Source of the DNA: Diplonema japonicum
Taxonomy: Eukaryota; Protista; Euglenozoa: Diplonemea
NCBI GenBank assembly: GCA_964019335.1
Contig: OZ025701.1
Coordinates: 124,001 to 188,000 of the forward strand
Direction of reading: 5' to 3'
Length of the DNA: 64,000 nt
A program made the position numbers and the translations under genes. This document shows, in pieces, positions 50,911-56,150 of this stretch; positions within the stretch are counted from its first letter, which is position 1, and each line of letters starts with the position of its first letter. Under the pieces are notes generated by a model. That model saw nothing but the letters and a program-made list of their open reading frames with translations, had not been told where the DNA came from and did no database searches.

Positions 50911-51722
50911 TAGCTTCGCTGTCGGGGAAGAAATTGTTGTGGTATGTGAGGAAAAAGAATGAAAAAAAAAAATGCTGGAAAGGAGTGAGTGGGGAAGGGG
51001 GCAGGGCTTTTACACACTATTCTTTTTTTTTTTTTTTTTTTTTCCCCGCTTTTAAATGAAAAATATAAGAAAAAAACCACGCGCGCTTTTAAGCGGTGTA
51101 AAAAAAAAAGGGGGGGGGGAGAGGGGAAAGAAACAGTGCTTAACATAATGTAGAAAATAGAAATTTAAAAAAAAAGAAGGAAAAAAAAAAAACTGCATTT
51201 TGAAAGAAAAATAAAGAGGGGAGAAAGAAAAGGGACGTCATTTCTTCTTTTTTTTTCTCACGGTGAAGGAGGGGGGTTACAAATATGAAAGAGAAAAAAA
51301 AAAGCTGAAAAATAAATAACCGCAAGAGCATTACAATCGACCCGCGTCTCTCTTTTATCTTTTCTCCTTTTTTTTTTTCCCCTTCTTTTTTCTCTCTTCT
51401 CTCCTCCTCTCCCTTTGTGCTCTGCAGCTCAAGCACAAATTTAAAAAAAAAAAAAAAAAAGGGAATAGATATTTAATCTTTTCTCTTCATTTCTTTCTCT
51501 TTTCCCCCTTTTACTTCCACGCCCTCCTCTCTCTCTTTGTTAAAAACAAGAAATTCGAAAGCATAAAAAAAAAAAGATTTAAAAAAAAAAAGCCAAGCAA
51601 CTATATGGGGACGAAAATCTTTCTGCGGTAAAAGATAAAAAAAGGGTGGGGGGGGATGGAAAAAAAAAAACACTTTTTTTTTTCTTTTTTTTTTTTTTTC
51701 TTTCGTTCTCCCCGTATTAACT

Positions 51723-52021
51723 TTATTCCTTGAGCCAGAAATGTTGTGTTTTGTCAGTCTTGTCAGCGGTACCCGCCCTCAACATGGACCACCTTTGGTT
51801 CGTGTGTTCGATCACCTTTAAGGTTTCAGTTACGCTCTGGTACTCAGCGTTCTTAAGGAAAGTGTTTGGCGATGCCTCATCAGGGGTTTTCTTGTCCGTT
51901 GTCTTGTAGAATCTCAACCAGTTCACGATTCTGTCCACCAGGGCATCACCCTTAATAGCCTTGAGGGAGGCAATGTCATTGATCCGGCTTGAATCAGGGT
52001 CCTCCAGGGAGATGGCAATCA

Positions 52022-52054
<33 letters not shown>

Positions 52055-55000
52055 CAAATACCTTCCAGTCAGTCTCTCCCGAGTCCACCATAGCCAGCGA
52101 ACCAAGCACCTTCACTGGTACCACGGAACCCATTGGGTACGAGATCGATCCAATCTTTTTTTTTTTAAGAAAAGAGTGGGGAACATACCTCCATGACGTC
52201 CAAAGGATCGTTGTCCCCGAGGTTGCCTTCTTCGTCCCTCAAGCTTCCGTCCTCCCACGTCTGGGGGAACAGCCCGTTGTTGAAAAACGACATCCCGTAG
52301 GTGTAGTGCCTGGGGACTTTGTTCTTCACATCCTGCTTGATGGGGTTGAAGGGGAGTTCCTTCTGCACCTCGAACTTGGAGTTCGTTCCCTTGGGGAACT
52401 CCACAACCATGTTGAAGTGCTCCCCCGTCTTCAGGGGCACATCATGCCATGGAGAGATGGTCGCACCAGCTTCGTTCTACAGAAGATTTTTTTTTTTTTT
52501 TCGTTTTTCCATTTTCTATAAATTACACACCGTAAGGTAGACAGCGAAGAGCTCACCTGGAAGCCCCACCTTGGTGGCGTTGACCATCTTAGCCTGTTTC
52601 GCGATGGTGGGGATCTGCTTGGATTGCAGGACGGCATTGGCCTTCACCAAAGGCTCGTCCTTGCTTTTGTAGTACTCCCTCATGATCTTCCACCCAGAGG
52701 GAACCATGAACTTGGGAGGGACGCACTTAGGGTCCTCAGACCACGTGGCGGGGATGGCTTCAATGGAGTCGCAGACGTCGACCATCATGCGGCCCATCTG
52801 TCGCATCTTCGACCCGGAGATCTTCAAGAACCTGTTGTTGAATTCATCCTTCGTGATGCCAGCGGGCTTCGGCTTCATCTCACCGTCTGTCTTATCGTAG
52901 TGCACGGCACCAGATGCGAGCAGCCCAAGCTTGCCCATCCCGGGTGACACCTGCAGCACGTACCTCCCATGGTCAGGTTCGTAGACATCGTCACCCTTCT
53001 TCTGGTTGTGTGCTTGGGCGTACTCGTCGGAGTAAGAAAGACCCGCAGGGTCCCTCCCTACAATGAAGTAGTCAGCCCCTGCGACCCTACGTGACTTGGC
53101 ATGCCACTGCACCTGTGATGGGTGAAGAAAACGGTTGGTTTCTTTTTGTTTTACTTACCTCTGTCGGTCCAGAGTACACCATCGGAGATGGCCAGATGGC
53201 CAGCACTGTCCACGCCTTGTCAAGCATCCCCTCGTCAAGGACGGCCTGATGCTGTTTCACCCTGATGTCCAACGGCACGTCGTCGCTCTTCGTCCACCCA
53301 CCCAAAGGCGACAGCCACAGCACAGGGTTGCGGTACCCCTTCTCGAGGAGCTGTTTTGGTTGGTTTTGACATCTACTGTGTTACATACCTGCTTCCTGCC
53401 GTCCTTCATGAGGTGCGCGTGCCCAGCGTGTGTGGGGTTCCTAGTCTGGAATGCAAATACACCGTCGGCGCCCTTCTCCTTGAACTTCCTGATGAGTTCT
53501 TCAGGAGTCAGCCTCCACTGGTCGAGCCCGTCGTTGTATTTGATCCTCCTCACCTTGCTCAATTCACCGCCGAGGAGGTACTCGCCAGCCTCAATGATGT
53601 TCTCCTTGATGTACGGGTGGTGCAGGTCCCATGACCCCCACGACCTGGTGATCATCTCTTCCTTCCTGAAGGCGTAAACTTCAGGGTCGTCAAGGATGGC
53701 AACGGGCTCACCTGCAGGGGACACAAGCACGAGTTGGACCTTGCCGCCCTTCTTCTGTGCCCTGTTGATGAGCATCTTCGTGTGCGAACTCACAGGGATA
53801 GCGATGGGCACAGGCATGCTGACCCTCTCCCCGTTGTGCACCATCCTTGCCGCACCTTTGCTGTCGCCGAAGTCGGTGCCTGCAGGTCCAGGGCCGTGAC
53901 CGCTGCTGCCACCACCGTTGTCCCCAGAAGGATCGACAAGCATGGAGTTAAAGTGCAGAGCCTGCACCAAGGCACTCTCTCTCATGGGGCCCTTCAATGG
54001 GGCCGCCCAGCCTTCACCGATGACCTGTACCCACTGCACATCAACGTCCCTGATGGTCACAGGCTGCAGTATGGTCACGGTGTCGGACTTCCAGAACTCT
54101 TCATTCTCTTCAATCACGTTGGGAGGGGTTGTGCCATCGGGGTAGCCATCCGCGTGGCCCATGGCCTCTTCGCCGGGTTGCTTCTCATGGTGCTTGTTGG
54201 TCTCCGCAGCTTTCGGGCAGTCCACAGGAGCGCCGATCTGCTGGGGTGACTTCTTGTTGGTGTTGATAACCTTCTTGGCGATGAGTTCGTCTCTGAGCTG
54301 ATCGACGCACGCATTGATGCACTGCTCGAGGATGGGAGGGCAGTGGTCCTGGAACTTAGTCTTGACAGGGAGGTTCTTGGCCTCGGATTTGCAGGTCTTC
54401 AGACGTTCTTCGGCTGCGGTGTTCTCGCAGCAAGTGCCGGTGTTGAGGGTAATCTCAGGTTTGAGGGGCTTTTCATAAGGGGCGTCGATGCCTGTCATGC
54501 CCTTGATCTTCCCTTCACGGACCTTCTTGTAGAGGCCTTTGGGGTCGCGCTCCTCGGCGACGGAGATGTCGACCTTGACGAAGACCTCGATGAAAGGGAT
54601 GCGCAGTCTTTCGTGGACCTCCCTGGCGGTGTCCCGGTCCTTGCGGTAGGGCGAGATCAGGGAAACGAGGGAAAGGGTGCCGGAGTCGGCCATCATGAGG
54701 GACACCTCATAAGCCCTGCGAACAGCTTCCGCACGATCCTCGGCGGAGAGACGGAGGTCCTTGGAGAGCCCGAACCTCAGGTTGTCACCGTCAAGACGGT
54801 ACATGTGAACAGAGTCATCGAGGACAAGGCGTCGCTCAAGAGCCTTGCCGATGGTGGATTTCCCTGAACCGGAGAGACCTGTCATCCAAAGAGTTGCGCC
54901 AGGCTGGCCGACAGCCCGGATACGGTCGGTGTGGTTGATGGCATCGAAGGTATCGAAGAAGATATCCTGTGACGCCTTTACAAGCACCTGGCTCCTGAGC

Positions 55001-55197
55001 TGCCCCATGGTCGGGCAGTCGCCACGTGTCTGCACCGACTTCCCGCTGTCCTTGAACATCAGCATCATGAGCACTGCCATGCCGCAGATCACCATCATGA
55101 TTATCTTTGTGTTACCTTGCGTCATCCCTGCTTTAGCCTCCGAGATTCCCCCGTTTACCTGTCTTTTATTATAAAGGTCTGGTCGTCTGGCGCTCAT
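51723..55197 (-). CDS. PAPSS: Trifunctional APS kinase-ATP sulfurylase-inorganic pyrophosphatase (PAPS synthase) with N-terminal TM anchor (1087 aa); introns 53351..53388, 53113..53158, 52477..52530, 52155..52188, 52023..52061
   Basis: APS kinase: [28 protein letters not shown] sulfurylase: [48 protein letters not shown]. Family I PPase: [29 protein letters not shown]. All join in one spliced frame. Confidence 0.92.
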
Positions 55198-56150
55198 GGT
55201 TGTCGCCTGTGTTGGGGGGTGAATTAGGTGATTTCTTTTTTTTGCGTAAATTGGGGGGGGGGGGGGAATGGAAATATATAATATTAAGGGTCCCTGCTTT
55301 GAGTCCCTTCAAAATAAAAATAAAAATAAGATAACGTCAGAAGGTAGTCTTTGCGGTCGAGATATTTGAAAGACGAAACGGAGTAGGAAGGGTTTGGGGG
55401 GGGGGGGGGGGGAAGGGGAAGGAAGAAAAATATCTTCATCTCTTGTTTCTTGTTTTCTTGTTTTTGTTTTCTTTTTCTTCCTTTCTACCCTTTTTTTTTT
55501 GCTTGAAGAAACGAGAAAGAAGGAGGGAAACCCGAGTCAAAAGCTTTATGCACACACGAAATCTGCATTGTCAACTGGCGTTTCTTTTCCCCTCTCCTTT
55601 CTTCTTTTTTTCTCTTTTTTTTTTTTCTTTTTCCCCTGCTTGAAGGCCACCTTGATCAAGTATTATTTTTATTTATTCCTTTTTGAACACAAACTAAATA
55701 ATTTGCTTACATTTATGAAATGAAAAAACAAAATTCCCCACTATCCTCACTCCCCCCCTAAAAAAACCTTTAGGGAAGAAGGGGGGAAACGAAAAAAAAA
55801 GAGAAAAAAAAACCAGTCTTTGCGTTAAAAAAAAAAAAAGAAAATGTATTGGGTTTCACCCTTTGTTCCAGTGCTTTTTTTTTACAGGGGAAAACCCCAC
55901 TTGAAGACCACCCTCAGGGGGCGGTGGGGTCTATCACTGATGTCCCCTATAATATAAATGAGGCGTTTGAGCGTGAAAAACTTTTCAAAATAAAAAAACT
56001 TTTTTTTTCTCAGACATTAGTCCGAAGAGAAGGCGTGCGTTTCATGTTGCAGCAGAGAACAGAAAAAAAAAAGGGGGGAAAAAAAAATGGTTCATACAAG
56101 GGGGAAAAAAAAAGGGATCGGAACCGAAAAAAAGGAAGAAGAAAGAAGGG

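Follow-up and report, generated by a model that had tools for sequence, protein, structure and literature searches.

A membrane-anchored APS kinase-ATP sulfurylase-pyrophosphatase of Diplonema japonicum and its candidate place in the secretory lumen

3'-Phosphoadenosine-5'-phosphosulfate (PAPS) is the universal sulfate donor, and in the accepted scheme it is made in the cytosol, nucleus or plastid and imported into the Golgi by SLC35B2/B3. Type II Golgi enzymes, such as sulfotransferases, glycosyltransferases and the Golgi phosphatase of 3'-phosphoadenosine-5'-phosphate (PAP), have a short basic tail, a short helix, a flexible stem and a large catalytic part, but to our knowledge none of them makes the sulfate donor itself. 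The window analysed here is the whole stretch of 64,000 nucleotides at positions 124,001 to 188,000 of contig OZ025701.1 (Diplonema japonicum, assembly GCA_964019335.1), and positions below count from its first letter. On its minus strand lies a gene whose product resembles these Golgi enzymes in build: a 31-aa tail, a 17-aa hydrophobic helix and a Cys-containing stem are followed by an adenosine-5'-phosphosulfate (APS) kinase, an ATP sulfurylase and an inorganic pyrophosphatase (PPase). The gene is a diplonemid member of a known triple-fusion family.

Stramenopiles and haptophytes have the closest described proteins, triple fusions with the same three domains in the same order (Patron et al. 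2008, PMC2275785; Bradley et al. 2009, as cited in PMC4220642). They are 40-47% identical to the window protein over exon 1, join it in one well-supported clade, and share its N-terminal helix, a homologous stem motif and a two-Cys loop. The window protein differs from them in belonging to the diplonemid clade, in its own six-Cys insert after the kinase and in a Tyr-to-Asn replacement in the NYG motif. PMC2275785 and PMC4220642 assign the triple fusions to the cytosol, with one doubtful plastid case, and are silent on the membrane segment. Human PAPSS1 (1X6V, E 1e-94) likewise has an APS kinase followed by an ATP sulfurylase, with all the catalytic motifs. Metazoan PAPS synthases, which are cytosolic or nuclear (PMC3252339), are unlike the window protein in that anchor, stem and PPase are absent and the core is Cys-rich. 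No description of a PAPS synthase that is membrane-anchored or lumenal came up in our literature searches, and the enzyme is unmentioned in a Cafeteria spatial-proteomics preprint and in the D. papillatum genome paper. The family-wide membrane anchor and cysteine purge reported below appear to be undescribed in the literature.

The triple-fusion gene has six exons on the minus strand (55197..51723), which encode 1087 aa with no internal stop. The model was built from six-frame open reading frames (ORFs) and the sequence, Pfam and homologue searches were run one exon at a time, and contigs from four public runs were placed on 51600-55500. An earlier sequence-only reading had correctly placed the gene and every element that it listed, but the coding region is divided by five introns and is not a single ORF. 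The parts of the transcript are as follows.

55207..55208, minus strand: AG acceptor for spliced-leader trans-splicing, from the junction of the X7 contig with the leader
55198-55206, minus strand: 5' untranslated region of 9 nt, AUG-free
53389..55197, minus strand: exon 1, 603 aa, with tail, helix, stem, APS kinase, Cys-rich insert, linker, PUA-like domain and start of the ATP sulfurylase (Pfam and RNA)
53159..53350, minus strand: exon 2, 64 aa (Pfam and RNA)
52531..53112, minus strand: exon 3, 194 aa, ending ..FAVYLT (joint 52476/52531, matching homologues P0003, P0006 and P0121)
52189..52476, minus strand: exon 4, 96 aa, opening the PPase domain (Pfam and RNA)
52062..52154, minus strand: exon 5, 31 aa (Pfam and RNA)
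51723..52022, minus strand: exon 6, 99 aa and stop codon 51723-51725 (ORFs, Pfam and RNA)

All five introns (53351-53388, 53113-53158, 52477-52530, 52155-52188 and 52023-52061) run from GT to AG. Run X7 gave a spliced contig of 3332 nt, identical to the window, which extends from the leader to past the stop codon, so that the three domains lie on one mRNA. It lacks exactly 53351-53388, 53113-53158, 52477-52530 and 52155-52188, each bounded by GT..AG on the coding strand. The fifth intron is poly-A-rich and was skipped as a repeat in the alignment; it follows from the coordinates of the contig, which has 10 letters against 49 in the genome, just as removal of 39 nt would predict. The same joints were found in two further runs, which come from relatives about 98-99% identical (about 1-2% of letters differ), while run X6 turned out to be unspliced DNA. 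For intron 3, a frame-keeping donor at 52570 (AAG/GTGGGG) was considered and rejected, since homologues and the RNA joint put the donor after 52531. The introns are very short (34-54 nt), and 52023-52061 is almost pure poly-A between GT and AG; poly-A-rich introns likewise interrupt other genes of this genome, for example L019.

At its 5' end the X7 contig follows the genome to 55207 and then continues with 20 letters, whose reverse complement, TACAGTTTCTGTACTTTATT, is the 3' end of the spliced leader. It is taken as the leader because, together with a following G and GT, it has 157 copies in the genome and 0 in the reversed control. These 157 places are spread over most contigs, often near contig ends, without a single tandem array. 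As the leader is joined at the AG of 55208-55207, the first AUG of the mRNA is that at 55197, upstream of the helix, and the recovered trans-spliced mRNA encodes the anchor. The sequence-only reading had proposed to map the 5' end by the spliced leader and had named an mRNA that begins downstream of the helix as an outcome that would refute it; the recovered transcript (X7 contig) instead has its junction 9 nt upstream of ATG 55197, with the helix included.

This bears on the possibility that a soluble isoform is dominant, arising by alternative trans-splicing or from an internal start past the helix, and that the anchored form is minor. A candidate start, Met64, does lie just past the helix, but no more than 3 of 8 diplonemid-type sequences have it, and the Met that follows is within the P-loop region. 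No Met between helix and kinase is conserved, which leaves no conserved route to a soluble isoform. Besides, the sole recovered 5' end carries the leader upstream of ATG 55197, and no pyrimidine tract precedes the candidate AGs in the helix-coding stretch. We consider a dominant soluble form very improbable.

The encoded protein has the following features.

55105..55197, minus strand: N-terminal tail, residues 1-31, starting MSARR, disordered in the AlphaFold2 model
55054..55104, minus strand: hydrophobic helix, residues 32-48, candidate signal anchor (AlphaFold2 helix 31-48; family-wide conservation)
54910..55053, minus strand: stem, residues 49-96, with conserved C61 (55015-55017) in C-P-x-x-G-Q-L-R (homologue comparison)
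54445..54900, minus strand: APS kinase domain, residues 100-251, Cys-free (PF01583, E 2.3e-56; 1X6V, E 1e-94)
54307..54432, minus strand: Cys-rich insert with C256, C257, C269, C286, C293 and C297, largely an insertion relative to human PAPSS1
53551..54120, minus strand: PUA-like domain of the ATP sulfurylase, residues 360-549 (PF14306, PUA_2, E 3.1e-22)
52792..53520, minus strand: ATP sulfurylase catalytic domain, in exons 1-3, split by introns 53351-53388 and 53113-53158 (PF01747)
52723..52773, minus strand: two-Cys loop (exon-3 C114 and C130), an insertion particular to the anchored family (alignment)
52573..52581, minus strand: N-A-T sequon in the ATP sulfurylase-PPase linker, exon-3 residue 178 (alignment)
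51789..52410, minus strand: family I inorganic PPase domain, split by introns 52155-52188 and 52023-52061 (PF00719)

Both split domains are contiguous across the exon joints: positions 2-43, 48-101 and 103-190 of the PF01747 profile fall in exons 1, 2 and 3, and positions 1-56, 59-87 and 89-152 of PF00719 in exons 4, 5 and 6. The APS kinase has its P-loop (at residue 107) and the DGDN, ISPY and KGLYK motifs, and the ATP sulfurylase has QTRNPxHxxH and GRDPAG. For the PPase domain the best PDB match is the trypanosomatid acidocalcisomal PPase (E 1.2e-23); in an alignment with that enzyme the expected Glu/Lys/Arg/Asp positions are kept, and the D-x-D-P-x-D signature reads DNDPLD. The description of three intact catalytic domains in the sequence-only reading therefore holds for these motifs but not for the Tyr of the PPase NYG motif, which we take to be the equivalent of yeast Y93 and which is Asn (FFNNG) in the window protein and in the diplonemid-type homologues read. 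AlphaFold2 was run on exon 1 only, with an alignment of 29 relatives; it gave residues 1-28, 49-58 and 315-352 as disordered and 31-48 as helical. Neither the sequence nor this model contains a membrane segment other than the single N-terminal hydrophobic helix.

The helix is short and has a Kyte-Doolittle hydrophobicity of about 2.8 over 17 residues (hand count), flanked by K31 and K49. A Hemistasia transcript and several genes from long ENA contigs are among the closest proteins to the window protein, at 56-66% identity. For another gene, proteins of D. papillatum are only about 58% identical, which marks the source as a diplonemid-type euglenozoan distinct from D. papillatum. In each of the eight diplonemid-type homologues a helix at the same position is followed by a C-P-x-x-G-x-L-R stem, which in the window protein places C61 within C-P-T-M-G-Q-L-R and leads to the kinase P-loop; R4 and R5 of the tail are kept in six of the eight. 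In total, 94 family members carry a strongly hydrophobic segment N-terminal to the kinase P-loop, including sequences of Pythium, Bremia, Saprolegnia, Aphanomyces, Nannochloropsis, Ochromonas, Emiliania and chlorarachniophytes as well as many marine sequences, and this segment usually follows KKR or RR. Matches that apparently have no helix start inside the stem motif or the helix, and look like 5'-truncated models. Nearly all of the triple fusions examined, from oomycetes, ochrophytes, haptophytes, chlorarachniophytes and diplonemids, carry a predicted anchor, and it is not special to the window gene.

A quick maximum-likelihood search with IQ-TREE, answering the earlier suggestion to compare the protein with stramenopile and haptophyte fusions, put the anchored fusions in one clade (support 100) apart from the anchor-less PAPS synthases. 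The window protein falls inside this clade, and the diplonemid subclade has a support of 99. Since diplonemids, oomycetes and ochrophytes share an alignable stem motif, anchor and stem look ancestral to the triple fusion. In another diplonemid-type genome, the paralogues P0001 and P0004, whose contigs are equal in length and probably one and the same, have identical catalytic cores and different tails, helices, stems and Cys-rich inserts. Recent duplication and gene conversion might explain this, or else the use of alternative 5' parts.

The second trait of the family concerns cysteine. Over the shared kinase-plus-sulfurylase core (515 alignment columns), anchor-less PAPS synthases have 2.21 Cys per 100 residues, while the window protein has 0.39, full-length diplonemid-type proteins 0.71 and other anchored members 0.23. 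The anchored catalytic cores are cysteine-purged, about ten-fold below the anchor-less PAPS synthases. It is not a species-wide composition effect, because a stand-alone ATP sulfurylase and a SULT-type sulfotransferase of the same genome contain 2.5% and 2.8% Cys, respectively.

The cysteines that do remain are confined and conserved. Ten follow the helix, and they sit only in the stem, the insert, the linker (C327) and one loop; nine of the ten positions are kept in diplonemid-type homologues, C327 being the variable one. All eight diplonemid-type homologues have the six-Cys insert (Cys conservation count 7/7), and the two loop cysteines are present in 28 of 28 other anchored members and in 3 of 3 full-length diplonemid-type sequences. 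The cysteines listed by the sequence-only reading are C61, C256, C257, C269, C286, C293 and C297, and the Cys-rich insert proved to be conserved and confidently folded: AlphaFold2 gives 253-307 as helices with a predicted local distance difference test score (pLDDT) of 92-97, and in the 1X6V alignment the segment from the CC pair (256/257) to the C293-x3-C297 pair is largely inserted relative to human PAPSS1. Stems elsewhere in the family are rich in S/T/P and Cys in the clade of the diatom Ditylum and have CPxC-type repeats in Emiliania. Long Cys/Pro-rich repeats (CPACDEC..KPCPAPEEC) occur in P0006 (diplonemid-type) and P0067 (Emiliania), in a linker or stem region that is simply disordered in the window protein. 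The cysteine purge and the conserved Cys clusters fit folding in an oxidising compartment, and an extracytosolic, oxidising location is the best reading of the sequence data.

The most likely version of this reading, to which we give an even chance, is a type II anchored PAPS synthase with its catalytic domains in the lumen of the endoplasmic reticulum (ER) or Golgi. Helix 32-48 would act as an uncleaved signal anchor and insert into the ER membrane, leaving the basic MSARR tail in the cytosol and the stem and three catalytic domains in the ER/Golgi lumen. Inside the lumen, sulfate and ATP would be turned into APS by the sulfurylase, the fused PPase would clear the pyrophosphate that a sealed lumen would otherwise accumulate, and the kinase would convert APS to PAPS for membrane-bound sulfotransferases; SLC35B-type transporters would pass PAPS on to cytosolic sulfotransferases. 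A fused PPase would be most sensible in a sealed space without another pyrophosphatase. From the sequence we infer ER insertion, the N-in orientation, disulfides, glycosylation of the NAT site, the supply of ATP and sulfate, and the choice of compartment. As to the last, the Golgi residence proposed before gains nothing, for no evidence favours Golgi over ER. A plastid bipartite leader was discarded as an explanation of the N-terminus, as diplonemids and oomycetes are plastid-free and the helix follows a long tail.

Topology was judged by sequence rules. Among the 94 anchored members, the N side of the helix is richer in K and R in 57, equal in 22 and poorer in 15 (means 2.51 on the N side and 1.12 on the other), a bias that would fit an N-in orientation. 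For the window protein these rules are ambiguous. One alternative is a tether facing the cytosol, in which the domains would sit on the cytosolic side of an endomembrane and PAPS would be made beside its transporter and imported in the canonical way. Such a tether agrees with the ambiguous flank charges and has ATP, sulfate and Mg2+ all at hand, and reviews treat triple fusions as cytosolic (PMC4220642). On the other hand, the 31-aa net-positive tail would have to be translocated, and the tails of relatives are 30-60 aa long and end in KKR. A cytosolic location would also leave the ten-fold purge of the core and the conserved Cys-rich stem and inserts unexplained, and would offer no reason for a fused PPase where soluble PPase is presumably plentiful. 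We regard this arrangement as quite unlikely.

Sulfate activation in a membrane-bound compartment has precedents. In the Entamoeba mitosome, ATP sulfurylase, APS kinase and a pyrophosphatase work in a sealed organelle and a carrier exports PAPS (PMC4621310, PMC9796589). The likeness to the arrangement proposed here is the membrane-bound compartment with a dedicated pyrophosphatase and the export of PAPS to the cytosol, but in Entamoeba the three enzymes are separate and soluble, bacterial in origin and housed in a mitochondrion-related organelle, whereas the window protein is one anchored chain. The mitochondrial "sulfate metabolising centre" of Euglena is such a case among euglenozoans, with sulfate activation that is membrane-associated and extracytosolic. 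Unlike the window gene, the enzymes listed in the Euglena proteome are a stand-alone ATP sulfurylase and APS kinase, with L001 and L031 (described below) as the likely counterparts in D. japonicum.

These precedents raise a mitochondrial alternative, in which the protein would be anchored in the inner membrane with its domains facing the intermembrane space, MSARR being the matrix signal and the helix a stop-transfer sequence. The intermembrane space is oxidising and would account for the Cys pattern as well; exported ATP is adjacent, and small molecules pass freely to the cytosol via porins, so that special transport of ATP, sulfate and PAPS would be needless, in agreement with cytosolic-looking sulfotransferases and an ordinary PAPS transporter. 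Biochemical work on Euglena, as summarised in PMC2275785, locates sulfate-metabolising enzymes at the outer face of the inner membrane, the Euglena mitochondrial proteome includes ATP sulfurylase and APS kinase (PMC7403612), and for Rhabdomonas PAPS synthesis is predicted to be mitochondrial (PMC8219788). However, the Euglena enzymes are stand-alone and not a triple fusion, and their likely counterparts are L001 and L031 rather than the window gene. The tail of the window protein contains D7 and E20, the orthologue tails have Asp/Glu, Pro and Gly after RR and vary in length from 5 to about 36, and in stramenopiles and haptophytes the homologous anchors follow acidic tails. A conserved N-x-T would be roleless in mitochondria, and a fused PPase would probably be less needed in a porin-open space. 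Moreover, the window helix is much more hydrophobic than typical mitochondrial sorting signals. The MSARR motif itself fits both readings, since RR at positions 4-5 is a known ER-retrieval signal of animal type II proteins. Overall, we hold a mitochondrial location to be unlikely.

To place the enzyme in its pathway, the 62.5-Mb assembly (132 contigs) was searched. The window gene holds the only APS kinase domain found in the assembly, and the check for cytosolic paralogues found no soluble APS kinase there. The stand-alone ATP sulfurylase L001 (G000:C102, L001:955-2151, plus strand) has 398 aa and the N-terminus MMTFTKTAMRGSLRQVRF, and the APS-reductase-type enzyme L031 (G000:C100) has the N-terminus MSIRRALQSTTRM and the CC..CxxC and ECGLH motifs. 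Both N-termini, short and Arg-rich, look like mitochondrial presequences, and the two enzymes are likely counterparts of the Euglena mitochondrial assimilatory pathway.

Sulfotransferases of two kinds are present: L006, L013 and L014, which lack a helix, look cytosolic, while L008, L009, L010 and L015 have a helix or signal, Sulfotransfer_2 enzymes being among these membrane- or signal-bearing ones. About 17 kb before the window, L011 (G000:C54:106990-107574) matches Sulfotransfer_2 and contains two TAG stops, either as a pseudogene or through unrecognised introns. The search for SLC35B2/B3 that had been recommended did find SLC35B-type carriers (L016, L017 and L018). L016 (G000:C10:718309-719250; L016:1471-2457, plus strand) is orthologous to proteins labelled in their source as PAPS transporter 2, and its C-terminus, KKRK, has the dilysine-type ER-retrieval pattern. 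L017 (G000:C15:26543-27430; L017:1393-3255, minus strand) is a 621-aa ORF in which an N-terminal domain is joined to half of a TauE/SafE anion permease (E 2.9e-16) and to a transporter of the SLC35B type. L018 (G000:C54:345893-346753, outside the window on the same contig; L018:1477-3162, minus strand) is a 562-aa ORF with an N-terminal sulfotransferase-like domain and an SLC35B/UAA transporter. Its sulfotransferase-like motif is LLVIGQERAGTTLL; the Pfam matches are sub-threshold in this genome, and in other diplonemid transcriptomes, where this type of fusion is kept, Pfam calls a sulfotransferase domain and the carrier is labelled SLC35B3/PAPST2. The two carrier fusions fit the lumenal reading as circumstantial evidence. 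Given a PAPS-transporter-like gene and cytosolic-looking sulfotransferases, PAPS must cross a membrane whichever way the enzyme faces, and the pathway inventory is neutral, neither proving nor refuting a lumenal enzyme.

Several observations weigh against lumenal synthesis. In the 15-residue flanks of the window helix, 1 K/R on the N side stands against 3 on the C side; the tail as a whole is nevertheless net +3. Both sequons noticed earlier are present, and the linker N-x-T is kept in 4 of 4 diplonemid-type sequences that cover the column, with a varying middle residue in an otherwise variable linker, which in itself speaks for an extracytosolic place; but the NHT sequon (residue 88) is not conserved among homologues, and sequons are not enriched (13 against 15.9 expected in diplonemid-type proteins, 100 against 106 in other anchored members). 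In some orthologues the conserved cysteines add up to an odd number. The PAPST2-like SLC35B transporter L016 is present as in the canonical cytosol-to-Golgi scheme, and the cytosolic-looking L006, L013 and L014 would need PAPS in the cytosol, both of which would suit a cytosolic tether. A Golgi-type PAP phosphatase bearing a transmembrane segment was not found in the assembly, where three genes of the inositol-phosphatase family all lack an N-terminal helix. MSARR resembles putative mitochondrial starts of this genome, namely MSIRR (APS reductase L031), MMLRR (IscU) and MMRTTQRR (citrate synthase). Finally, the contig data show assembled transcripts, in which minor trans-spliced isoforms, including soluble ones, are invisible. 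In sum, the earlier proposal of a lumenal, disulfide-stabilised type II protein is partly supported, by the Cys pattern, by the anchor in the mRNA, by the conserved linker N-x-T and by the absence of a soluble APS kinase among the genes found, but not by the protein's own flank charges or by any enrichment of sequons.

A wider proposal, possible though doubtful, is that all cellular PAPS is lumenal in diplonemids and, by homology, in stramenopiles, haptophytes and chlorarachniophytes. SLC35B1-like carriers would then supply the lumen, the TauE fusion would bring sulfate, and the carrier-sulfotransferase fusion would hand PAPS to cytosolic acceptors. If true, all-lumenal synthesis would reverse the textbook direction of PAPS traffic.

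Even without a lumenal location, triple fusions regarded as cytosolic appear to carry a membrane anchor and Cys-purged cores. If the enzyme does face the lumen, several large and mainly marine protist groups, among them diatoms, haptophytes and oomycete pathogens, would make the sulfate donor where sulfated glycans are built, and the fused pyrophosphatase would be explained by that location. It would be a clear, testable case of a cytosolic pathway relocated to the secretory system, and it would change the models of sulfation for the producers of much of the ocean's sulfated polysaccharide.

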